Virus record (IMG/VR): IMGVR_UViG_3300027996_002186
Location: 62,001-126,000 of that record
DNA: 64,000 bases
Direction: 5' to 3' (one strand)
Position 1 is the stretch's first letter, and the number at the start of each line of letters is the position of its first letter. The notes below the pieces were generated by a model. That model saw only the letters and a program-made list of their open reading frames with translations. It was not told where the DNA came from and did not search any database. The position numbers were made by a program, and so were the translations under genes. Below, piece by piece: positions 1 to 18,669 of this stretch.

Positions 1-2140
1 TTGTTTGTGTTGGCTTACCACCCTTTTGGTTGATAAAAGTACCATTCTTTATCAACTTAGCTGAATTACCAGATGGAATACCAGCGAACATTTTTTGAAT
101 TCTACCTCCTTTACCGGAGCTCTGAGTCAATTCAGATATTAAAAAGGCACATTGTGCCTCAAATAAATAAGGCACTGATTTCAAATATACTTCGAGTTTA
201 TTTAAAGTATCTCTTCCAATCTTAACAGTTCCGCCTCCATGTGGTCTTGGATCTGTATCAAGGAATCCATTCTTCAAAGCTGAAGTCTTAACTCCTTTGT
301 TAGTTAGATACTCACCACAAAATTTCTCCATGTTATATCTCCTTGAATATGTCCATTGAGCTAAGCCGAGACCAGAGAATACTTGACATTTACCTTTCTT
401 ACACGTATAATGTTTTACTGATCCTTGTTTTGCGTTCTCTTTTGACCACCGTTTTGCACCCATCCCACCGGGTACTATGTAATTTGCTTGATTTTCAATA
501 TTCCAAAATTTAAAACTTGATTCTGCATCGATATTACCACAGATACCAGCTGCTTGGTCTTTTGTAAACCCGCCCTCCTTGATTAACAATTCCATCAAAA
601 TATAAATCGCCTGTCGTTTCGTTTGGTTGTTACTAGGTGATGCTGGTGTAGGAGGTTCACCAGTAGCTGGATCAGCGTCTGGATCATTGGATCCATTCTG
701 TTCCCGCGCCTCATCCCGCTCCTCAGCTGCTTCTGCTTCTGCCTCCTCTTGACCTAAGAATGCAGTTTCTCGGTACTCATCGTCCAATTCACCAAGTTGT
801 TCAAAATCATCCTGGAAAACAAACCCACCGGGTTCGATTAGTGTTAATTTACCAATTTTTGAATCTACTATTATTGATAAAGAATCTTCATATGATTTGA
901 GAGAATCGTTACTAGTTGTTCCGCCGCTTGCACTTCCACTTGATAAAGGAAGAAACACTCCCTCAATTTCAACATTGAATGTTATTATATTTTTTTTTGA
1001 TTCTACATCACCGCTTTGTGAACCCGTAATTACAGGCGCGGGCTCTTCTACTTCTTCTTCTGGTAGTAATTTTATGGGGCTTTTATACTCTACTAATTCT
1101 CCTGAATAATATAAACCTTTTTCACTTTTAGCAGGTGTTGAATTAGCCGCCCCCAATCTACCACCACCTTCGGGGTTATATATGTTACAAGCCACACCAT
1201 TACCAAATATTTTATTAGTGTTCCCATCCTTCGCTGGCCACCTACCGAGTGATGTTTCCTGTGGATCTATCAACTCACATTGACCAACATTATAATTAGG
1301 TACTTTTTTATTCCAAGCAGATAGTATATCATTTATGATATCAACATCATCAACATTACCAGTATATTTCTTTTCTTGCTTCTCTAATTTTGTTGTGGTA
1401 GATTTCCCAGTATCGTCATAAGTCGTTTCATATCCAACCTTAGTAGATAATTCTAATAAATTATCCTCTGTTATATAAAGAACAGATTCTTCGGTCTTCC
1501 ATTGTGGATCAAAAGAAGGGTCACTAGGAGTCCGTATGGTTACCGACTTAATTATTCTAGATTTGATACTTTGATAAATTATCAAACCATTACCATCTCC
1601 AATACTACCATCACTATAATAGGATTGTGTGGGTGATACACCATCAGGTAATGCTAATTCATTACCTTCATCATCACTCCATTGTTCACCACCCAACATA
1701 GTATATGGACCAACAGTGCGCCCAAAGTATGTAGTATCTCCATTTTCATCGACCTGACTAGAAGATGCGCCGAAGTCTGGTGATGTCCATCTAATATCTA
1801 CCCTTGTTCCATTATTTAAATGATAATAATCGGATCCGAAGTTTCTTTTTCTAGCTATATTTACTGACCAGGGGTCCTGTATTATTTCAGAGCCTTTGGG
1901 TATTTTACCCGAGGCCGAATTCACATGCAACCAATCAGCTATGATTTCATCGGAACTCATATCTTTATACCTATTACCTTTATAATCCCCTTCACCTAGA
2001 ATAGGACCGGTATCATAATCATTAACGTATCGAGTTAATCCATAAACGATTCTGCTTTTAAGTTTACCGTTATTTTTAAAATTCTCAACCACACGGACCA
2101 TTATATCACCTGTAATTCTAACCTCTTTAACTATTCCCAT
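1..2140 (-). CDS. Virion tail/baseplate protein with phage tail lysozyme domain (partial, runs off the left edge)
   Basis: Not in the ORF track. ATG at 2140 (MGIVKEVRITG...). The same frame near 600-350 reads GFTKDQAAGICGNIDAESSF...GLGLAQW, the GNxxxES / GLxQW signature of phage tail lysozymes. Confidence 0.7.
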   Translation of the reverse strand, partial: MGIVKEVRITGDIMVRVVENFKNNGKLKSRIVYGLTRYVNDYDTGPILGEGDYKGNRYKDMSSDEIIADWLHVNSASGKIPKGSEIIQDPWSVNIARKRNFGSDYYHLNNGTRVDIRWTSPDFGASSSQVDENGDTTYFGRTVGPYTMLGGEQWSDDEGNELALPDGVSPTQSYYSDGSIGDGNGLIIYQSIKSRIIKSVTIRTPSDPSFDPQWKTEESVLYITEDNLLELSTKVGYETTYDDTGKSTTTKLEKQEKKYTGNVDDVDIINDILSAWNKKVPNYNVGQCELIDPQETSLGRWPAKDGNTNKIFGNGVACNIYNPEGGGRLGAANSTPAKSEKGLYYSGELVEYKSPIKLLPEEEVEEPAPVITGSQSGDVESKKNIITFNVEIEGVFLPLSSGSASGGTTSNDSLKSYEDSLSIIVDSKIGKLTLIEPGGFVFQDDFEQLGELDDEYRETAFLGQEEAEAEAAEERDEAREQNGSNDPDADPATGEPPTPASPSNNQTKRQAIYILMELLIKEGGFTKDQAAGICGNIDAESSFKFWNIENQANYIVPGGMGAKRWSKENAKQGSVKHYTCKKGKCQVFSGLGLAQWTYSRRYNMEKFCGEYLTNKGVKTSALKNGFLDTDPRPHGGGTVKIGRDTLNKLEVYLKSVPYLFEAQCAFLISELTQSSGKGGRIQKMFAGIPSGNSAKLIKNGTFINQKGGKPTQT

Positions 2141-2178
2141 ATTGTATATTTATAATTATCTTAACCCCCGCTATAAAA

Positions 2179-4422
2179 TTAATCAGAAACGTCAATTAAT
2201 TCACCTACTACTTCTTTACCATCATCTGATAATGATGAAACTATAAGTTCGTATATTTTACCATTACCATCACTAAGTCTATATGATTCACCAATATTAT
2301 AGACCTCATTTGGTTTAGGTTCCTCAACAGGATTATCATTTGTTTCTGCATTATCAACACCCTCTTTTGCTTTTGTTGGTATGTCTAATTCCTTGTTTAA
2401 TTTACCTAATTCTTTTCTAGCTATTTTAACTTTTTGTGTTAATTTACCAGATCTCCAAGAATATCTAATGTCTATTATTAACCACTCACCGCTCATCCGC
2501 TCATCAAGATATGATTCTGTTGTTTCTGTTTGTGGTGTTCTTTTAGTATTTGTAAAGTTGACTTGTATTTTTTGATATTTATATATGTTAAAATTAGGTT
2601 GTGGTAATTGTAACTCGGCTGTTATTTTAACCATGTTATCTAAGTTAATTCTATTTTGTGTTTCTGAATAGAGATAATTTTCATGAACATTATCCATATC
2701 AACTCTGCCTAAAAAATTAGTTCTATAATTTTCTTTAAATGATTTTTCATCACCAGGTGCTCCCTTTAATGAGACAACATCATCCTTTTTTGTAGTTAAA
2801 GAGTCAATTTTGAATATCTGCATAATTTTTTTATTACTATCATAGTATTTGGTAATAGTAAATTGTCCCTTTTTAAGTGATTGGCTTGTTGAATTATTAC
2901 TTATTTTGTATGATGAAAAATATAAGTTGTTACTTTGATTACTCTGCTCGTTAGATAAAGCGAGGGGTATTATTTTACTCTCATCACTTTTACCCACTGT
3001 TTGTGTAGATAAACCTGATGAATCAACACCAACATCTGATGATATATCTCTATTCCATTCTTTTTCTATATCAACATAGTTAAAACACCAATAATGATCA
3101 ATATAACCTAATACAAAAGAGTCATCTGATATATATGAGTGTTTTATAATATTGGAAACAAAATCTTTAAACAACATACCTGTATTTGTCCATTTCATCG
3201 AATCTTTTGTGTTATTTATATTTGAATTAAATCCTAGTTTTAATTCTTTTGATATCATATCAAATGTATCAAATGATGTTCCGGTATATGATTTATAAGC
3301 TATTTCATAAAATTTGGGTAAGTCAATAGATCCAGATATTGTATAATTTTTCCTCTTTCTTTGAAAGGTTTTAATCTTAAATTTTAGGTGTATTGATTTT
3401 AAATTTTCAGATCCAGAATTAAGAAATATTTCAAACTTAGTATCATCAAGTGGAGCACCTTCAGCTTTCATAATACCGAGCGTATCTTTGAATGTTACAA
3501 TCACCGTTGGTGATATTCCTTCGTGATAAAGTTCAAGTGACTTAATATCCTTTTCAGGTATTTGTAGTGCATTATACCATAAAAACGGCATATAACCTTG
3601 TCCCTGTGAGTCCGTATTCTGTTGTGCGTCCTCGGTGACCTTATATTGAATTGGTGGTAATATTACTTCTGGTTTACGTATCTGTGCAATTATTGGTCTA
3701 TCTCCTTCTACTTTTACTTCATCTGGGCCACTATCATCCTGTTCTATAAGTTCATCCTCCGGTAATACTGTTATTGAAAATTCTGTGCTATCAAGATCTG
3801 GTGATGTTGGTGTTACTGCTATAATATAATCACCTGGTTTATCGAATTGTAACCCAGAAAAGTCTATTTCTCCATTGACAACTTCTTTTTCGGTAATACC
3901 AATTATAACACCTGGTCCACTTTTAACACTTAATGTTATTTTTGTATTTATAGACTTTGGATCTACTATCGCTGATGTTTGTTTATTTGATGGTTCTGGA
4001 TCGCTCTGTGGTGTGCTCTGTGTACCAGTTTGTGGTTCTTCTTCTTCTTGTTTTGGTTCCTCTGGTGCTGGCTCCCAAACCAATCTTGGTCCAATAGTAG
4101 TGCCATAGATATCATCTATGATTCCAGCCATTTCACTTAATAGTATATCAATTGCGTATTTAAGGGATCCTGGACCATCACCCGTGAAAGGAGTAATTGC
4201 TTCTTGGGTTCCCTCTATGGTAAATTCACCAATATCAACTATTTCTTGTGCTGATTTACCATCAATCGTAACACTACTATTTGTTGTGAATGGTTTGGGA
4301 AATCCATTTACGGTACCAAATACTGTTAATTTATTGAATTGGTTTTTATTATCTATTGTTCCGGTTATAGATTTCTCTGCATCTGATACAGGGTTTTTTA
4401 CGAAGAGTGACCAATTTGACAT
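2179..4422 (-). CDS. Putative baseplate hub-like protein with an N-terminal acidic/Ig-like extension
   Basis: 747 aa. C-terminal SGEWLIIDIRYSW...KVKIARKEL resembles the end of myophage hub proteins. Lies directly upstream of the tail lysozyme gene. Confidence 0.45.
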   Translation of the reverse strand: MSNWSLFVKNPVSDAEKSITGTIDNKNQFNKLTVFGTVNGFPKPFTTNSSVTIDGKSAQEIVDIGEFTIEGTQEAITPFTGDGPGSLKYAIDILLSEMAGIIDDIYGTTIGPRLVWEPAPEEPKQEEEEPQTGTQSTPQSDPEPSNKQTSAIVDPKSINTKITLSVKSGPGVIIGITEKEVVNGEIDFSGLQFDKPGDYIIAVTPTSPDLDSTEFSITVLPEDELIEQDDSGPDEVKVEGDRPIIAQIRKPEVILPPIQYKVTEDAQQNTDSQGQGYMPFLWYNALQIPEKDIKSLELYHEGISPTVIVTFKDTLGIMKAEGAPLDDTKFEIFLNSGSENLKSIHLKFKIKTFQRKRKNYTISGSIDLPKFYEIAYKSYTGTSFDTFDMISKELKLGFNSNINNTKDSMKWTNTGMLFKDFVSNIIKHSYISDDSFVLGYIDHYWCFNYVDIEKEWNRDISSDVGVDSSGLSTQTVGKSDESKIIPLALSNEQSNQSNNLYFSSYKISNNSTSQSLKKGQFTITKYYDSNKKIMQIFKIDSLTTKKDDVVSLKGAPGDEKSFKENYRTNFLGRVDMDNVHENYLYSETQNRINLDNMVKITAELQLPQPNFNIYKYQKIQVNFTNTKRTPQTETTESYLDERMSGEWLIIDIRYSWRSGKLTQKVKIARKELGKLNKELDIPTKAKEGVDNAETNDNPVEEPKPNEVYNIGESYRLSDGNGKIYELIVSSLSDDGKEVVGELIDVSD

Positions 4423-9072: not shown

Positions 9073-10269
9073 ATGGATAAGGGATATATAAAAAATATGA
9101 TACAGAAGATTCTTGATAAAGAGTTTTCTCATAAACAGAAGCGTCGTCTTAATGATTATCACGATAGACTTAACATGGCTTGTCCTTATTGTGGTGATAG
9201 TCACCGTCACAAACATTCTAAGAGAGGCAATCTCTATTTCAATAGATTATTCTATATTTGCTTCAACTGTGATAAGAAGACTACCTTAGACAAGATGTGT
9301 AGGGATTTCAATGAGCAAATTGATCCAGGTAAGAAATTAGAAATGATTGAGCACTTAGATAGTGTCATGACTTATAATGATTACGAAAATGAGTTTGTAG
9401 ATGCTCAATTTGATAATCTAATTGATATGGAAGATCTTGAAGCAGCTTTCGCTTCTGATATAACTCCCATAAATGACTTCCAACCTATTAAGGTTAATGG
9501 TGGTATTTATAAGTACCTTATTGGTAGAGGAATAGGTCCCGAATTACATAAAAATATTTATCAAGCAAAGTATCACAAAAACGAAAACGAAAGTGAGTGG
9601 ATAATAGCTATGTTAAATAGAAGAGGTGATAAGATAATTGGAATGCAAGTCAGAAACCTTAAAGGTGGTAGACGAAGAATGTTCAAGATATACAATTATG
9701 AGAATCTATTAGAGTGGGTTAATCATGGTAAAGAAGAGCCTCTTAATATAGATATGGGTGAGATGGTTATTTATAATAAATTATCATACTATTTTAATAT
9801 ATTGAATGTTAACTTCGAAAAAAGAATAACCGTATTTGAGGGTTATTTAGATTCTTTATTCTATCCAAATTCAATAGGTTTGGTTGGTGTAAATACTGAT
9901 TATAGATTTTTGGAGAATAATGGATTTGATATACAATATTTCTTTGATAATGATGAAGCTGGTTTTAATAAGTCAGAAGAAAAAATGAATGATGGGTTTT
10001 CTGTCTTCTTGTGGAGAAAATTATTAAACGATATAGTTGATAAAAAGAATTCGACAGATCCATATAAGCTATTCCATAGAATAGTTAAGGTCAAAGATAT
10101 AAATAAATTGGCTGAGTTAGTACCAAATCCCTATAAGGCTCTTAAATTACCTGATTATTTTAGCACAGATGTTCTTGATGTTAAATGGATACCTAAAATG
10201 AATAAAGGTAAGTGGGTAGAAAGAGAAACTGATTATAACAAGAAATTTGATAATTTTAATAGATTATGA
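9073..10269 (+). CDS. DNA primase (T4 gp61-like)
   Basis: Zn finger CPYCGDS...CFNC, TOPRIM motifs FEGYLDSLF and FFDNDEAG, and KDIN. Confidence 0.9.
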   Translation: MDKGYIKNMIQKILDKEFSHKQKRRLNDYHDRLNMACPYCGDSHRHKHSKRGNLYFNRLFYICFNCDKKTTLDKMCRDFNEQIDPGKKLEMIEHLDSVMTYNDYENEFVDAQFDNLIDMEDLEAAFASDITPINDFQPIKVNGGIYKYLIGRGIGPELHKNIYQAKYHKNENESEWIIAMLNRRGDKIIGMQVRNLKGGRRRMFKIYNYENLLEWVNHGKEEPLNIDMGEMVIYNKLSYYFNILNVNFEKRITVFEGYLDSLFYPNSIGLVGVNTDYRFLENNGFDIQYFFDNDEAGFNKSEEKMNDGFSVFLWRKLLNDIVDKKNSTDPYKLFHRIVKVKDINKLAELVPNPYKALKLPDYFSTDVLDVKWIPKMNKGKWVERETDYNKKFDNFNRL

Positions 10270-10314
10270 ATTGGCATGGTGTGTGTTAATACAGGTAGTT
10301 GAGTTATTTATATA

Positions 10315-10622
10315 TGATAAAAGATGAATTGATACAAATAAAAATATCCAATAAAACACTCTCATATTATTTGAATATTAAAGAGAGGTATCATCAACAT
10401 TAATACAAGATGGATCTGGTATTTTAATAACAGGAATATGTGATTTTTGTGGGAATGAAAAGTTAATAAGTAAGAAAAAATATAACACACAAACCAAGTT
10501 TTCTAAGTTGGGATTCTCCTGTTCCAAACCAAACAGAACATTCTATAATGAACGAAAGGGGTTATTATCGGATATTTGATTGTGGGTCTAAAAAGTGGAT
10601 TAGGAAATTTAAATATCTTTAG
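10315..10622 (+). pseudogene. Decayed homing-endonuclease-like gene
   Basis: Three out-of-frame pieces: MIKDELIQIKISNKTLSYY, then GICDFCGNEKLI...FSCSK, then TEHSIMNERGYYRIFDCGSKKW. These resemble the N- and C-terminal motifs of mobile endonucleases of large phages. Confidence 0.6.
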
Positions 10623-11092
10623 ATAATTATATTACCTTTATTTATATACTTTTTATTTTTAGTAAAAAGAAATGACTTAAATTCTTTATTTCCTCTTTCT
10701 GCATTACAATCTTTACAACAAACAACTAGATTTACTTGACAATTATTACCACCTTCTGATATGGGTACTATATGATCCGCCGTAGCGTTTTCATAACTTA
10801 ACTTTTCTTCACAATATAAACAAAGGCTACCTTTGTTTTTATTTATGAAATCTTTAGCGAATCCGCTAGTTCTTCTTTTAACATTTTTACCGCTATATTT
10901 TAGTCCGACCACAACAAAGTCTTTCATATATTTGAATTTTTTCCTATATATCTCACAAGATTTATAGTTCTTATTTACAATGACTACCAACTTTATTAAA
11001 AATTTCCATCTGTTGTATGTTTTCTTTTCTACTGAGAGAAAATGTGGGTGTTCCGATTTTACTAGGAATTTTATTACTTTTATTACTTTCAT
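10619..11092 (-). CDS. HNH endonuclease
   Basis: CLYC...TADHIVPISEGG...NLVVCCKDCNAERGN. Confidence 0.85.
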   Translation of the reverse strand: MKVIKVIKFLVKSEHPHFLSVEKKTYNRWKFLIKLVVIVNKNYKSCEIYRKKFKYMKDFVVVGLKYSGKNVKRRTSGFAKDFINKNKGSLCLYCEEKLSYENATADHIVPISEGGNNCQVNLVVCCKDCNAERGNKEFKSFLFTKNKKYINKGNIII

Positions 11093-13249: not shown

Positions 13250-14008
13250 ATGCTAAATTATAAAGAGTATTTAAAGGAGGCCCAAGATAATCAAGTCGTT
13301 GTGTTGGATGATGGACAAGGTGGTAATATGTTTAAGACTGTTAAAAATGGTAGTAAGAACTCAATTACTTATCTTAATGCTGTTATAAAAAGGTTTATCG
13401 AAAGTGTTTATGGATCATCTGGGTTTGTTTATGGTAAACATACTGATATATTTATCGATAATAAGATAATTAATGGTGAGTATATATCAAAGATGGTTAA
13501 TAATTACACCATTTTTAAAAATGTGATAAGAATTAATAATATTAAAGAGGAAGAATCTTTTTATAATTTTATGTTATCTAATCTGAATAATATTTATTCA
13601 CCAAATGGTAAATTCTTTTTAGAACAATCATTACCTATTTTAATAAACACAACTAGAAGGGGAAATGTACTTGAAAAAATGGCTAAGGAATCCTTTTTAA
13701 AGTATTCTAAAGAAAAAGATATCGAGATTACTATACAAAACCCTTCTGTTGATGAAGATATAAACGGTGTTGATTTCAAATTCTTATCCAATGGTAGAAG
13801 TTTTACTGTTCAAGTAAAGCCATTTACTGATTATAAGTATATTGGTGATAAAATTTTCATAAAGACAGAAGGATCTTTATCATTGAATACAAACTACTTG
13901 ATACTATGTGATGGTAAGAATTGTATTAAATTAAGAAATACACCCTCTAATCCAGTTAAAATAAAAGGTAATACTTTTATTTCAAGTAAATCTAATCTAC
14001 TTATTTAA
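13250..14008 (+). CDS. Putative PD-(D/E)xK-fold nuclease-like protein
   Basis: G-x2-LE helix followed by DINGVDF...TVQVK; N-terminal tag MLNYKEYLKE. Confidence 0.45.
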   Translation: MLNYKEYLKEAQDNQVVVLDDGQGGNMFKTVKNGSKNSITYLNAVIKRFIESVYGSSGFVYGKHTDIFIDNKIINGEYISKMVNNYTIFKNVIRINNIKEEESFYNFMLSNLNNIYSPNGKFFLEQSLPILINTTRRGNVLEKMAKESFLKYSKEKDIEITIQNPSVDEDINGVDFKFLSNGRSFTVQVKPFTDYKYIGDKIFIKTEGSLSLNTNYLILCDGKNCIKLRNTPSNPVKIKGNTFISSKSNLLI

Positions 14009-15462
14009 ATCCACCGAATATATCCATTACCACACTCAATCTTCTTGTTATTTCTGGCATACCTAATGGTTCAATAATAGAATTAATTGGTGATAGTATT
14101 GATTTCTCAAATTGTATATCATAATCTATCTCAGGAGCAAATTCAATCGGGTAAGACCCTCTAGCATAAGCAAATGTGGAATTAACTGATTTATCTTTAC
14201 AGATATAATATTTAATCTTTGTACCAGATTTCATAAATTCATACTTATCTTGTAATTTCTTATCATTGTTCAATAAGTAATTATGATAAGCGGCCGCTTT
14301 AACAGCAAAGTGAGCTCCACTTATAAATTGTAATGGTAATGTTTTATCATTTAAAACTTTCTCATCATATTTATTACAAGATGATTGCATTGCGATATCA
14401 TCAACATCAGCCAATTCAAATTCCTTTCTAAGACCTTTTACCAATTTAAGTAAATCCTTTATATTGAATGTATCGGGATTCTCAAATAAATACTCTACTA
14501 TCCCAACAATCTTATCACGAGCAAAGGCTGGTGTGGATGACCTAACAAGTTCAACTCCTTTAGGATAAATATATTTCAATCTATCATATGGAATACCATC
14601 CTCATATAAAATATGTTGTATGTATTTTTTCTTAGCAATATTTATAATTGATTCTGATATTCTTTCAAGTTCAAAATCTTCTTTGTTTTCAACACCATAT
14701 GATTCTGCGTGTTTATCTAAACAATCTTTGAAGTAACCCTCATATTTTATTTGGTCAACTCCTAATATAAAATCAACCTCAGTAGACCAGTTCCAGATAA
14801 TATCATTTGTTAAAACTCCATCATCTATCATCTTATTTAACTTCCTATCTTTCACGAAGTTACCATCTATTAAAACTAACCCATAATCTTCTTTCAGAAG
14901 TTCTGTAAATTCCGTGATATCTTTTGACATACCCAAATAATTTGGATTATCTGTTTCTATCAAATCTCTTGATAGTATAATAAATTTCTTATCAATTGAA
15001 GATAGATATTCATCGTTAAATACTTGATCTCTCCAAGTACAATGGTCCATACAAGGTTTGAATGAAACAAAAATTGAATCGGTATCACCATAGATACTAA
15101 CATCCTCTTTCGTATCAATTGGTGTGATATCTTTTATATTTAATTGTTTGTGTAGCTCAGTATCAAGATGCCATTGATTATACCAATAATCTTGGTTATC
15201 ATCATCCATCTTTCTAGTCAATTCTCTACCCTCTGCTGTTATAGTACCTGCAACGTGGTTGTTATAAAGTATGAAGTATGGTGTTGCGAAGGCTCCATAA
15301 GAACCATTCAATACAAGTTTTAGTCATTTACCCCCACTTAAAATAAAGCGGGGGTGATTAAAGAGCGAGTTGAAGGGCATTGTAGTAATCTACTTCCTTT
15401 TTCAACTCGCTCGCTTTAATTTTTAATGACTCGATTTTTTTTATTTTTTCGGTTTTTGTCAT
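14001..15462 (-). CDS. Family B DNA polymerase, C-terminal subunit of a split gene, interrupted by a 40-nt gap at 15321-15360
   Basis: ORF1 15462-15361 (MTKTEK...YYNALQLAL*) plus ORF2 from 15320 (KLVLNGSYGAF...YGDTDS...KKKY...KGVELVRSSTP) together rebuild motif B QLALKLVLNGSYG and motif C. No exonuclease domain or motif A is present in the window. Confidence 0.9.
15321..15412 (-). other. Candidate programmed translational bypass element in polB
   Basis: CTT TAA TCACCCCCGCTT-TATTTT-AAGTGGGGGT AAATGA CTA AAA, plus a perfect 12-bp inverted repeat at 15363-15374 / 15401-15412. Confidence 0.7.
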
Positions 15463-15527
15463 ATTTAATAAATTTGTTATAAAGGGTACTTATACATTTT
15501 GATATATAAATAAACCTCTTAAAGTAT

Positions 15528-15614
15528 ATGATAAAGGAAGAAAAAGTTTCAGTAAAAATCGGACCACGTAACATAAAATATTTTAATATGTGTGGATATG
15601 ATGTTACACTTTAG
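15528..15614 (+). pseudogene. Truncated N-terminus of a homing-endonuclease-like gene
   Basis: MIKEEKVSVKIGPRNIKYFNMCGYDVTL*, similar to the N-terminus of the remnant at 10315. Confidence 0.45.
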
Positions 15615-15664
15615 TCAGGCGCAATTTGGTCAGATAACAGAACTATACGCCTATATGGTATTTG

Positions 15665-15986
15665 TTATGCTGATTGATAACCACTTATATTCTCACCATC
15701 ATAATAGTCGATACCTATCCAATTTTCATAATCTTCTACATTCACGTTTATATAATTCCCATTGTGGTAATAATTCACCAGGTATAATAATAAACAATAT
15801 AGGATCTGCCATTAGCTCTGTACCTCTTTTAACCTTTGTTTGTTTTGATTTTAATTTTACAATATCAACCTTTGATACATTATCAACTCCATATCTCTCT
15901 AAACAGGTTTCTTTTATTTTAGATATGATTGATTTTTTATTTATCTTATATTGATTATAGTAATGGAAATAGTAGTAACCTATCAC
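15665..15986 (-). pseudogene. Frameshifted homing-endonuclease-like remnant
   Basis: KIKETCLERYGVDNVSK repeat motif and WELYKRECRRL, continuing in another frame as YENWIGIDYYDGE before a stop. Confidence 0.55.
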
Positions 15987-16048
15987 TATTTGATTAATCA
16001 GATATATTATATTTTAAATTTAATATATAATAAAAATAACAGTATCAA

Positions 16049-16457: not shown

Positions 16458-17360
16458 TTAATAGATAATTGGTCCATCAAACCCCAAACGAACATTTTGA
16501 CCATCAAACACAATTGTTTCCGTTATCTCAGAAGGCTTAAATGTATTTTTGTGATAAACTTTCATTGGTCTTCTAAAGTCTTCTTCTGGTGGAGTATAGA
16601 CATAATTAAAACACTCACATCCACCACCCGTTCTTTTCCAAGACTTGGTTAAAAAAAAGTTATCACCTATTAATTCCTTTATGTGAAAATAAATATAATT
16701 CTCTTTTGAGTATTCATTGATAGGCATTAAAGATACTAAACCAATATCATTTATCTCAACAGAGTTTGCCCATTCTAAATATTTAAATACTTCTTCTGGT
16801 GTATCTATATAATTCTTTATTAAGTTACATCTGAATTGTACTTGGTGTGGATGTGTTTGTAAATGGCTTATAGCCTTTATCTCTTCTGATGTAGGAGTTT
16901 TGCATTTGAATATCTCATCATTAATCTTATCATCATAGTGGTGACGACTAAGTTGTATATAATCATATCTTTTAGCAATAGGGTCGTTAAATAACTTCTC
17001 CCATCTAAATCCGTCTGTATTCAGTGATAATTCACAATCAGGTGCATATTCCACACCAACATTGGACATTTCCAGAAAATTATCCCAATATAAAGTTGGT
17101 TCTCCACCAGAAATGGCTATTTTTCTAATCTTAATTCTATCTGATATATGTTGTAAGACTTCTTTATATTTTTTACCGTTCCATTTGGATGCGTCTGAGT
17201 GATATGTACAGAATGAGCACTTAGCGTTACAGAATTTAGTTCTAACATAAAGATTTATATAAGGTTCTTCAATGGCGTTTCCCTCCTCCTCTCCAAATAA
17301 GGCACAATTATGAGTTATTAGCTTAATTTCTTTCCCGAATAATTCGATTGATTCTAACAT
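16458..17360 (-). CDS. Radical SAM protein
   Basis: CNAKCSFC (CxxxCxxC), SGGEPTL, NTDG. Confidence 0.9.
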   Translation of the reverse strand: MLESIELFGKEIKLITHNCALFGEEEGNAIEEPYINLYVRTKFCNAKCSFCTYHSDASKWNGKKYKEVLQHISDRIKIRKIAISGGEPTLYWDNFLEMSNVGVEYAPDCELSLNTDGFRWEKLFNDPIAKRYDYIQLSRHHYDDKINDEIFKCKTPTSEEIKAISHLQTHPHQVQFRCNLIKNYIDTPEEVFKYLEWANSVEINDIGLVSLMPINEYSKENYIYFHIKELIGDNFFLTKSWKRTGGGCECFNYVYTPPEEDFRRPMKVYHKNTFKPSEITETIVFDGQNVRLGFDGPIIY

Positions 17361-17649: not shown

Positions 17650-18669
17650 TTATATATTAAATTGTGAATTTACAATTTCAATAGATTTGCTTAATCTATC
17701 TCTCCAATTACCACCCACTTCTATATAATTACAATTGTACTTTTCCAATTCTGATTTAATAACATTATAATGTTCCATCCTTTCTTCTAAAAACTGTCGT
17801 GTTCCGTCTTGAACACCATCACAATCAGGTTTCAATAGTAAGTATAAATCATAATTACTATTTTTATATACTTTATCTAGTAATATGTTTTCAATACTTT
17901 TATAACCATTTGGAAAATACATTTTTGAGAAGAGGTATGTTGTTATATCCTCTGTATCACAGAATAATAATTTATTGGATGTCTTTATTTTTTGATTTTC
18001 CAATTCTTGTCGACCAACAGATATTGGGATAAAGTCTTCTATTCCTATTTTATTACCATTTCTTTCAAATACAGTTCTGCCATATTCCTCAACAAAATTT
18101 GTGTTATAGTATTTAGCTAAATTTTCACTCATTGTTGATTTCCCAACAGATTCCGGCCCCATAATAACAATTCTCTTAACGAAGTAGGGTTTTATTTCAT
18201 CCGGTATAAATTCCCAACTATCAAAGGGGTTAGTTCTTACTTTAGTTCCTGATATAGGAAATTTCTTTCTTTCTTTATCAACTAGATAGTGTTTTATACC
18301 CAAATATTTAGCAAAATCATCACCGTAATTCTCAGAAGTGAATACACAATCTAATTTACCAACAAATTTATAAACAAATGGAACCCAATAAGAATAAAAT
18401 TCATCAAGTGATTTACATTCGTGTTCATATTGTGGCATCTCACTATCATCAACAGAGTGTATTATGACATTTGGGTTACTTTCATATATTTCTCGTAAAG
18501 ATTTTACTCTTAATTTACCAGGGATTGTTTGTGTAGGATTATGACAAGCTAAAACATGAACAACTTCCGAATTTTCCAAAGCGGTGTCTATTAAATAAAG
18601 GTGCCCGGTGTGTAATCCGTAGAATTTACCCAATACTAAACTACTTTTGTACTTTTTATCCATTTCCAT
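17650..18669 (-). CDS. nadR: NadR-like NMN adenylyltransferase / ribosylnicotinamide kinase (no HTH domain)
   Basis: GKFYGLHTGH (HxGH), ISGTKVR, P-loop GPESVGKST, EYGR, CDTE, DGTR. Confidence 0.9.
   Translation of the reverse strand: MEMDKKYKSSLVLGKFYGLHTGHLYLIDTALENSEVVHVLACHNPTQTIPGKLRVKSLREIYESNPNVIIHSVDDSEMPQYEHECKSLDEFYSYWVPFVYKFVGKLDCVFTSENYGDDFAKYLGIKHYLVDKERKKFPISGTKVRTNPFDSWEFIPDEIKPYFVKRIVIMGPESVGKSTMSENLAKYYNTNFVEEYGRTVFERNGNKIGIEDFIPISVGRQELENQKIKTSNKLLFCDTEDITTYLFSKMYFPNGYKSIENILLDKVYKNSNYDLYLLLKPDCDGVQDGTRQFLEERMEHYNVIKSELEKYNCNYIEVGGNWRDRLSKSIEIVNSQFNI

Follow-up and report, generated by a model that had tools for sequence, protein, structure and literature searches.

A marine giant phage carries a 40-nt hairpin-bearing insert inside the most conserved motif of its split family B DNA polymerase, next to the remnants of a dead, putative homing endonuclease gene, and the comparison with related loci suggests that insert and endonuclease move together as a mobile cassette and that the insert is probably skipped by the ribosome through translational bypassing, as in phage T4 gene 60, although no RNA or protein data show the bypassing itself. 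The stretch analysed here (the window, 64,000 nt, C1:124448-188447) belongs to the 242-kb IMG/VR virus record IMGVR_UViG_3300027996_002186, and the locus, in window coordinates, is organised as follows.

14001-15320, minus strand: C-terminal half of PolB downstream of the gap, containing KLVLNGSYG (motif B) and YGDTDS (motif C), with the resume codon AAA (Lys of motif B) at 15318-15320 and the stop at 14001-14003.
15321-15360, minus strand: 40-nt coding gap, with an in-frame TAA at 15358-15360 directly after the take-off codon and the landing codon CTA at 15321-15323.
15330-15355, minus strand: hairpin inside the gap, with a 10-bp stem (five C:G pairs, then G:U, C:G, U:A, U:A and an A:U pair at the base) and a 6-nt loop, starting 5-6 nt after the take-off codon.
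15361-15462, minus strand: 34-codon leader of the C-terminal half (MTKTEKIKKIESLKIKASELKKEVDYYNALQLAL), with the take-off codon CTT at 15361-15363.
15463-15527: 65-nt divergent intergenic region between the polymerase leader and the endonuclease start; intact relatives have the same layout with 63-77 nt.
15528-15614, plus strand: N-terminal remnant (28 codons plus stop) of the free-standing endonuclease, in its native position and orientation.
15665-15986, minus strand: inverted, frameshifted middle/C-proximal fragments of the same endonuclease gene, with one KYGV/DUF7487 repeat and then WIGIDYYDGE, ending just before the HNH-like motif; the first ~50 nt (about 15936-15986) are not endonuclease-derived.
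15950-15997, plus strand: tail (IDYSNGNSSNLSLFD plus stop) of an unrelated 200-aa ORF that occupies this slot intact in the closest gapless relative, LR745206, and most of which is absent here, where the cassette segment lies.

The C-terminal polymerase gene starts with an ATG at 15460-15462, 34 codons before motif B, and its first frame ends in YYNALQLAL followed by TAA, while the 436-aa frame at 14001-15311 continues in another frame and, read back to 15320, gives KLVLNGSYGAF. This protein matches Pfam DNA_pol_B (PF00136, E 5e-15). The closest gapless relatives, LR745206 (84% aa) and LR756502 (69%), read ...QLALKLVLNGSYG... without interruption and start their gene at the same place, the leader being 76% identical (aa) to that of LR745206; the insert is therefore real. 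An assembly artefact was rejected since contigs of DNA runs from at least six studies hold the stretch at 99-100% of sampled words, a 57.6-kb contig of one run is identical across it (though this run may be the source sample), and eight or more sequence variants were found at the same site.

The preliminary description had inferred that the exonuclease and motif A half must be a separate gene outside the window, and this gene does exist in the same record, about 96 kb away, at C1:234401-235939 on the plus strand. It encodes 512 aa, contains DFASLYP (motif A), aligns to RB69 gp43 residues 184-494 and ends with an acidic tail (...DILDQIAELEGEI), whereas the leader of the C-terminal half is basic; the split maps to the tip of the fingers domain, after RB69 residue ~494. 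The split is conserved in four complete relatives and is ancestral to the whole clade, being present also in gapless, endonuclease-free relatives with the halves roughly 100-280 kb apart in record coordinates, so that it was not caused by this endonuclease and merely provides the upstream slot. No other PF00136 match was found in the record.

The two convergent endonuclease-like remnants of the preliminary description are instead pieces of a single dead gene. The segment 15726-15986 (minus strand) matches Pfam DUF7487 above its cut-off (30 bits, E 6e-7) and phrog_3339, annotated as homing endonuclease, and a profile built from intact relatives hits three pieces: 15528-15614 (plus strand; profile positions 1-27, E 1e-5), 15726-15986 (minus strand; positions 183-247, E 1e-11), and 15665-15778 (minus strand; positions 256-275, E 7e-4). 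These correspond to the N-terminus and to an inverted middle/C-proximal part, while the HNH-like C-terminal end is absent. The family comprises free-standing endonucleases with an N-terminal DNA-binding-like module, a zinc ribbon, DUF7487 repeats, and a C-terminal HNH-like region. The intact proteins, of 287-389 aa, have invariant D-H-K...N-L-C...N-S-K residues (D290-H291-K292...N313...N322) and match PHROG homing-endonuclease families; their fold matches are dominated by HNH domains but are weak and not statistically significant (best E 0.1, target-normalised TM 0.34-0.58), and a profile search against solved structures found nothing relevant. Inverted repeats that could explain the inverted fragment were looked for, but none was convincing.

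Among 58 related loci, 28 distinct alleles carry inserts of 36-48 nt at six codon junctions within motif B (QLA|L|KLV|LNG|S|Y|GAF). Gap lengths fall in all three residues mod 3 and the gaps carry stops, yet every gapped allele keeps an intact downstream frame of about 430 aa. At five of the six sites the flanking codons share their first two bases (CTT/CTC>CTA, GCT>GCT/GCA, GTT>GTT/GTA, GGT>GGT, TCT>TCA), while gapless alleles use assorted Leu codons at the corresponding position (CTT, TTA, TTG, CTA). In contrast, at the sixth site, after Tyr, the triplet before the resume codon is TAA, AAC, AGC, CAA, or GAC and never a Tyr codon. The landing codon is the first matching triplet after the hairpin in all 17 non-B variants and the tail before it is mostly AT-rich, with the G-run of the 3' arm ending 5-12 nt before landing. 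An in-frame stop lies within two codons of take-off in 22 of the 28 folded variants: in 4 it is the first codon, as in the window, in 18 it is the second, and in the other 6 it lies further on or is lacking; where the stop is second, the first codon is often the common UUU, and slow decoding in the A site is not obvious.

Each of these inserts has a C/G-rich hairpin starting 5-7 nt, mostly 6, after the last codon read, with folding energies from -17.5 to -34.6 kcal/mol and z from -3.1 to -12.4 (-18.1 kcal/mol and -6.1 in the window); only in the related loci L026 and L029 does the hairpin include the take-off codon. A consensus fold computed with RNAalifold on a MAFFT alignment of 24 gaps recovered only four C:G pairs because the loops are out of register, whereas a structure-anchored pair count across 24 variants showed that the five outer pairs are nearly always C:G and that pairs 6-10 change on both sides. 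No other copy of the hairpin was found interrupting a gene in the 242-kb record, the only other C/G hairpin resembling a terminator.

The association between gap and endonuclease anticipated in the preliminary description is supported across relatives. Intact endonuclease genes lie 63-77 nt upstream, in divergent orientation, at 16 gapped alleles and remnants at 2 (the window and L010, a 99%-identical strain), whereas none of 17 gapless alleles has one (Fisher 8e-6); ten gapped alleles have no endonuclease, and a phylogenetically independent test is underpowered, with 4 supported pairs and none in the contrary direction. On the polymerase tree the gap state changes at least 11 times and the site state at least 20 times. 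The two endonuclease clades track the gap position, one going with the sites after A, L, and V and the other with the sites after G, S, and Y, with two exceptions. Moreover, near-identical genomes differ by the cassette: L024 and L026 (94% nt) differ by a clean ~860-nt endonuclease indel; L021, gapless and without endonuclease, is 91-94% identical to L024, which has both; L019 and L013 (95%) carry gaps at different sites and diverge only from the endonuclease through to the end of the gap; and L010 has lost about 15580-15978 but kept the gap.

The reading that best accounts for these data, held with reasonable though not full confidence, is that the locus is a decayed copy of a mobile cassette formed by the endonuclease gene, transcribed divergently from just upstream of the polymerase C-terminal gene, and by the ~40-nt insert, placed about 100-130 bp into that gene. 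By inference, the endonuclease would cut the uninterrupted motif-B DNA of phages lacking the cassette, and recombinational repair would copy into them the endonuclease gene and the linked insert, which would break up the target and make carriers immune. Since motif B cannot tolerate amino-acid changes, the insert would have to be removed at expression, most likely by bypassing: the ribosome would stall with CUU in the P site, in front of UAA and of the hairpin, the peptidyl-tRNA would leave its codon, the ribosome would slide over the hairpin and the same tRNA would re-pair at CUA 40 nt downstream, decoding being resumed at AAA to give a product reading ...ALQLALKLVLNGSYGAF... across the junction. 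Whether a single tRNA-Leu can read both codons depends on the host. In the window the endonuclease has died, while the gap persists because only an exact 40-nt deletion could remove it.

Other explanations appear unlikely. Removal of the insert from the RNA as a micro-intron, by an unknown hairpin-directed cleavage and ligation, would leave the link to the endonuclease unchanged and finds some support in the conserved hairpin with flanking short repeats, in the lack of a matching landing codon at site B and in one metatranscriptome contig that reads a gapless QLAL|K junction at 92% identity to the window and could be a spliced form from a relative. However, gapless DNA alleles are common and explain this contig more simply, and codon matching at five sites, a stop after take-off and an AT-rich tail preceded by a G-run (itself also part of the hairpin) are signatures of bypassing that splicing does not need; furthermore, 36-48 nt is far below self-splicing intron sizes, and no exon-exon pairing for a bulge-helix-bulge motif was obvious by eye. 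The collapsed intron proposed as an alternative in the preliminary description is likewise not supported, with no Rfam match at E <= 1 apart from a chance sRNA hit. RNA contigs cover parts of the polymerase gene but none from this strain crosses the gap, and one run of unknown kind retains it.

Even less likely is that the gap is not skipped at all, with the polymerase working from separate pieces (512 aa, a 34-aa peptide, and a 436-aa protein restarted after the gap) or the gene being a pseudogene. A TTG at 15309-15311 could restart translation, a G-run resembling a ribosome-binding site lies upstream of the resume point and the polymerase is already a split enzyme; nevertheless, this restart would drop the motif-B lysine, restart codons are not conserved (the related locus L037 has no ATG, GTG, or TTG near its resume point) and restart would not explain the matched flanking codons, while a pseudogene would keep neither intact downstream frames in 28 alleles (56-85% aa identity among the IMG/VR relatives) nor covarying hairpins. 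It is also improbable that gap and endonuclease are neighbours without a functional link, the hairpin being an independent small mobile element, like mitochondrial GC clusters or byps, that favours motif B, and the endonuclease targeting something else. The ten gapped alleles without endonuclease, the homologous hairpin cores at sites one codon apart in L013 and L059 and the resemblance to Magnusiomyces byps in size and G+C content favour this view, but it is opposed by the single hairpin of this kind found inside a gene in 242 kb, by the absence of the endonuclease from gapless alleles, by the match between endonuclease clade and gap position and by the divergent tract between L019 and L013, which runs from the endonuclease exactly to the end of the gap.

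The closest known system is the T4 mobA/gene 60 cassette (Bonocora et al. 2011, as cited in Manning & Atkins 2022, doi 10.1101/2022.08.31.505936), to which the locus is analogous but not homologous. In both cases a free-standing endonuclease, HNH-type in T4 and HNH-like here, lies directly upstream of an ORF with a leader of about 34-46 codons followed by a 40-50-nt coding gap in an invariant motif of an essential replication enzyme that is itself a split protein; matched take-off and landing codons, a stop after take-off, and a stem-loop are shared, the G-run before landing, with its mostly AT-rich surroundings, may correspond to the G-rich element of gene 60 although it is also part of the hairpin, take-off can shift by one codon between variants, and the endonuclease decays while the gap is kept, T4 itself carrying a mobA pseudogene. 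In contrast, the interrupted gene is topoisomerase II (Toprim) in T4 and PolB motif B here, with no sequence homology of gap or leader, and the preprint reports all homologous cases in topoisomerase genes, with no mention of a polymerase. Here the HNH-like motif is C-terminal, after the DUF7487 repeats, whereas in the Mob proteins the HNH domain precedes a distinct C-terminal region (PMC2988022); the endonuclease is divergently transcribed; the hairpin lies 5-6 nt downstream of the take-off codon rather than including it; six take-off sites use Ala, Leu, Val, Gly, Ser, and Tyr codons, against two in gene 60; the split of the host gene predates the cassette, with the other half about 96 kb away; and the phages are marine huge phages (relatives of 635-735 kb), not T4-like phages.

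The split gp43 (43A/43B) of Aeromonas phages 25 and 44RR, with the seg43 endonuclease (as summarised in PMC2988022), is also a family B replicative polymerase encoded as two genes whose products must reassemble, with a homing endonuclease associated with the split region, but those halves are adjacent, whereas here they lie roughly 100-280 kb apart in all five genomes examined, and those phages have no coding gap. The byps of Magnusiomyces capitatus mitochondria (as summarised in doi 10.1101/2022.08.31.505936) are G+C-rich inserts of 27-55 nt in an AT-rich genome, bypassed with matched or near-matched codons and AT-rich 3' parts, and the tolerance of some landing mismatches may be relevant to the Tyr site; however, they are dispersed (81 copies in 12 genes) and not linked to an endonuclease, while here a single copy was found within a gene of the 242-kb record, in motif B and linked to an endonuclease. 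Fractured genes, namely split inteins with a free-standing endonuclease between them (PMC2677866), are another way for selfish elements to sit inside conserved motifs of replication genes in marine metagenomic phages, and occur in the same polymerase gene in some relatives, at motif C, but their removal is by protein trans-splicing and the window has no intein.

Efficient programmed bypassing of tens of nucleotides is established in only two natural systems, the T4 gene 60 family and Magnusiomyces mitochondria, and the reason for the gap in gene 60 has long been debated. It is somewhat more likely than not that the present locus represents a second, evolutionarily independent family of programmed long-range bypassing in phages, in the catalytic motif B of the replicative polymerase of marine huge phages and carried by a homing-endonuclease cassette. 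An independent case would show that immunity by an untranslated insert is a recurrent evolutionary solution, and its six take-off positions with six codon families and dozens of hairpin variants, including a Tyr site that seems to land without a cognate codon, would amount to a natural mutational series for the rules of take-off and landing. Gene callers will report these polymerases as truncated or frameshifted, and together with the clade-wide split and the motif-C split inteins this could make huge phages appear to lack an intact polymerase.

Nucleotide identity between the window and LR745206 is 68% in the leader and 73-84% just after the gap, a drop too small to prove a co-conversion tract in this pair. 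Ser is found at leader position 12 in 20 of 27 gapped alleles and in 0 of 15 gapless ones, which is only a hint of a nascent-peptide signal and could be due to hitch-hiking.

On the minus strand, the C-terminal polymerase gene is opened by a 34-codon frame, MTKTEKIKKIESLKIKASELKKEVDYYNALQLAL, and forty nucleotides after its last sense codon the sequence continues in a different frame with AAA CTT GTA TTG AAT GGT TCT TAT GGA, which encodes KLVLNGSYG, and then runs open to 14001. When joined, the two parts read QLALKLVLNGSYG, which is the motif B of family B polymerases; the downstream part matches Pfam DNA_pol_B (E 5e-15) and contains YGDTDS (motif C). The elements of this gene are the following:

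15460-15462, minus strand: ATG opening the 34-codon leader
15358-15360, minus strand: TAA ending the leader frame
15321-15360, minus strand: 40-nt insert
15321-15323, minus strand: CTA triplet, the inferred landing codon
downstream of the insert to 14001, minus strand: open frame with the rest of motif B and motif C

The window corresponds to bases 124448-188447 of a 241,918-bp IMG/VR virus record, in which the only other polymerase B match is a 512-aa gene at 234401-235939. This gene carries DFASLYP (motif A) and aligns to RB69 gp43 residues 184-494, that is, up to the first long helix of the fingers; the polymerase is therefore split at the fingers tip, with the two halves about 96 kb apart, and the preliminary description was correct in placing the exonuclease and motif A half in a separate gene outside the window. 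The N-terminal half ends (record positions 235901-235939) in an acidic heptad-like tail (DILDQIAELEGEI), while the C-terminal half begins (window 15400-15462) with a basic one (KIKKIESLKIKASELKK), and these may zip the two fingers helices together, like the added tails of other endonuclease-split enzymes. CheckV rates the 242-kb record 89% complete; however, an identical polymerase locus lies on a 483-kb IMG/VR contig (L009), and complete relatives are 635-735 kb, so that the record is probably less than half of the genome.

The nearest relatives are metagenomic huge phages, namely LR745206 (635 kb, 84% aa identity), LR756502 (642 kb, 69% aa identity), LR756501 and LR756503 (735 kb), and LR756504 (636 kb). 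In the four examined, the C-terminal gene starts at the same place, about 30–45 codons before motif B, and each has a separate N-terminal gene roughly 100–280 kb away in record coordinates. None of these four has a gap or an endonuclease at the locus; the split therefore predates the gap and the endonuclease and does not depend on them. In some other relatives, the C-terminal gene is split again inside motif C (YGD|TDS) by what looks like a naturally split intein (loci L037:3100-4910, L039 and L040, and L046, L051, and L053 around 1060-4190): the N-part ends ...EDHSLIVFRNGEK...RVIIHN, and the C-part starts M...EYVYD.E..DE.HTFIANDILVHN followed by TDSIFVSF. In L046, L051, and L053, a free-standing ORF of 369–371 aa (phrog_22677, no Pfam hit) lies between the halves, which is a 'fractured gene' layout, and L052 also has an insertion of about 470 nt at the same point.

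LR745206 and LR756502 read ...GCT CTT AAA... and ...GCA TTA AAA... straight through, which defines the insert of the window as exactly 40 nt. DNA contigs from at least six studies contain the stretch at 99–100% of sampled words, and a 57.6-kb contig of one sequencing run, X1, which may be the source sample, is identical across it. Among the 58 IMG/VR loci that encode this protein (L-numbers), 28 distinct alleles carry an insert of 36–48 nt in the same ten-codon stretch, at six different junctions.

Table. Junctions of the inserts within the motif B stretch, flanking codons, and IMG/VR loci.
Junction; flanking codons; loci
after Ala; GCT ... GCT or GCA; L013/15, L053, L054, L055
after Leu; CTT or CTC ... 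CTA; window, L030, L037/39/40, L042 group, L050, L051, L057, L059, L060
after Val; GTT ... GTT or GTA; L031, L046
after Gly; GGT ... GGT; L062-65
after Ser; TCT ... TCA; L045
after Tyr; TAT or TAC ... no Tyr codon; L019, L023-26, L029, L032, L036, L058

Every variant has a strong hairpin that begins 5–7 nt, mostly 6, after the last codon read (the take-off codon), with a stem of about five C:G pairs followed by four to six variable pairs and a loop usually of 4 nt; folding energies range from -17.5 to -34.6 kcal/mol, with z-scores against shuffles of -3.1 to -12.4. When the stems are anchored on the C-run, pairs 1–5 are nearly invariant C:G, while pairs 6–10 take UA, AU, CG, GC, GU, and UG in different variants, so that the helix is conserved rather than its sequence. 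In two endonuclease-poor Tyr-site variants, L026 (2950-3000) and L029 (homologous gap, leader starting at 2829), the stem extends to 19 bp and includes the take-off codon itself (-34.5 kcal/mol), a geometry closer to that of T4 than any other variant. An in-frame stop lies at the first codon after the take-off codon in 4 variants, including the window, and at the second codon in 18 of the 28. Only one such hairpin occurs inside a gene in the 242-kb record, and it is therefore not a dispersed repeat; the only other C4/G4 hairpin with a short loop, at 215675-215720 of the record, is flanked by A and T runs on both sides and looks like a bidirectional terminator.

Between the hairpin and the resume point lies a tail of 5–12 nt, mostly AT-rich, which in all 17 non-Tyr variants has no earlier triplet sharing the first two bases of the take-off codon. 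At five of the six sites, the codon before the gap and the triplet before the resume codon share their first two bases, whereas gapless alleles use assorted synonymous codons at the same position; these codons belong to four-codon families, in which a single tRNA with a modified U34 may often read codons ending in U, A, and G. Only one tRNA gene (Arg-TCT, 14109-14183) is present in the record, so any phage tRNA relevant to the hop could lie elsewhere. Gap lengths fall in all three residues mod 3, and all gapped alleles keep an intact downstream frame of about 430 aa. The otherwise identical gaps of L037 and L039/L040 differ by one G in the G-run (8 versus 7), giving lengths of 42 and 41 nt; length and frame of the gap evidently do not matter, or this is a homopolymer sequencing error. 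In addition, residue 12 of the leader (window 15427-15429) is Ser in 20 of 27 gapped alleles and in none of 15 gapless ones (Fisher 2e-6), which could be a nascent-peptide requirement for the hop or sequence hitch-hiking with the cassette.

Upstream of the leader, the minus-strand frame 15726-15986 hits Pfam DUF7487 above its cut-off and PHROG 'homing endonuclease' families. In 16 of the gapped relatives, an intact or nearly intact gene of 287–389 aa lies divergently, 63–77 nt upstream of the polymerase leader, and comprises, in order, an N-terminus MIKEEKV.VKI..RN..YY..GY, a Cys4 ribbon, two to five KYGV (DUF7487) repeats, W.G.DYYD, and a C-terminal YPTIDHKIS...NLCITKR.INS.K, in which residues D, H, K, N, N, S, and K are invariant. 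A search with a predicted structure (mean pLDDT 81) finds mainly HNH nuclease domains, namely the Cas9 HNH domain, the Gme HNH nickase, and PacI, although these matches are weak (best E 0.1). Against a profile of the intact genes, the window has three pieces, adjoined by a fragment of another gene:

15528-15614, plus strand: first 28 codons of the endonuclease, in native place and orientation
15726 to about 15935, minus strand: one repeat plus linker, inverted
15665-15778, minus strand: W.G.DYYD piece, frameshifted and inverted
15950-15997, plus strand: last 48 nt before the neighbouring gene, the tail of a 200-aa ORF that fills this slot intact in LR745206

The two inverted pieces stop just short of the HNH-like motif; the 'two convergent remnants' of the preliminary description are thus one dead gene. 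A strain 99% identical to the window (L010) has cleanly lost about 15580-15978 while keeping the gap. A second remnant of the same endonuclease family (profile positions 35-84, E 1e-5) lies at window 10314-10576 (plus strand), just downstream of a primase-like gene (9073-10269) and next to an intact 157-aa classical HNH gene (10619-11092, minus strand), and another N-terminal-only copy of the family lies at 197645-198067 of the record.

None of the 17 distinct gapless alleles with readable upstream sequence has the endonuclease, while 18 of the 28 gapped alleles have it, 16 intact or nearly so and 2 as remnants (Fisher's exact test, 8e-6). This test ignores relatedness, and the phylogenetically independent test has only 4 supported contrasts, none of them contrary, and cannot reach significance. 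The pairwise comparisons are more telling: L024 (gap plus endonuclease) and L026 (gap only) are 94% identical, apart from a clean ~860-nt indel that is the endonuclease gene; L021 (no gap, no endonuclease) is 91–94% identical to L024 on both sides; L019 and L013 are 95% identical on both sides but unalignable exactly from the far end of the endonuclease to the end of the gap, and carry gaps at different sites (after Tyr versus after Ala). On a tree of the C-terminal 259 residues, the gap state changes at least 11 times and the site state at least 20 times. The endonucleases fall into two well-supported clades, one accompanying the sites after Ala, Leu, and Val and the other those after Gly, Ser, and Tyr, with two exceptions; this is what is expected if each clade recognises its own part of the motif B DNA and the insert sits where it breaks that recognition. 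Gapless (L033, L041) or 5'-cut (L038) loci carry, just downstream of the polymerase gene, a short ORF of 128–158 aa (L033-35:4386-4859; L041:4380-4763; L038:1309-1710) homologous only to the N-terminal third of the endonuclease and without a nuclease part.

A cassette made of an endonuclease gene, a short divergent intergenic region, the polymerase leader, and the gap is present or absent among near-identical phages, and the endonuclease decays while the gap stays. By analogy with MobA/gene 60 and other free-standing endonucleases (PMC2988022; doi 10.1101/2022.08.31.505936), it can be inferred with good confidence that the enzyme nicks or cuts gapless motif B DNA in co-infecting phages, that repair copies the cassette into them, and that the insert protects carriers. 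The removal of the gap by translational bypassing is somewhat less certain but remains the more probable reading. The sequence signals suggest that ribosomes take off from the codon 6 nt before the hairpin and land on the matching codon after it; in the window this is CUU with UAA in the A site, landing on CUA at 15321-15323 and resuming at AAA.

The matched codons, the hairpin, the stops, and the intact downstream frames are together the recognised marks of peptidyl-tRNA re-pairing (doi 10.1101/2022.08.31.505936), and a pseudogene, a restart, or a splice that ignores codons would not produce them. However, the Tyr site has no Tyr landing codon, many variants have UUU rather than a stop in the presumed A site, and the hairpin geometry differs from T4. 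Bypassing is, moreover, inferred without RNA or protein evidence; metatranscriptome contigs cover parts of the gene but not the gap of this strain, and one gapless RNA contig from a 92%-similar relative cannot be assigned.

The architecture closely parallels the T4 MobA element, but the window is not a member of that family: the host gene differs, there is no sequence similarity, the endonuclease has a different domain order, and the hairpin is placed differently. The 2022 survey of gene 60 homologues found them only in topoisomerase genes and has no mention of a polymerase (doi 10.1101/2022.08.31.505936), and no report of a coding gap in a phage polymerase was found in full-text literature searches. 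Split gp43 with an associated seg endonuclease is known in Aeromonas phages (PMC2988022), but there the halves are adjacent and ungapped. As for the genomic surroundings, the neighbouring genes in the window encode a radical SAM protein (16458-17360, minus strand; PF04055, E 3e-13) and a product that by eye resembles NadR-type nicotinamide-nucleotide adenylyltransferase/ribosylnicotinamide kinase (17650-18669, minus strand).
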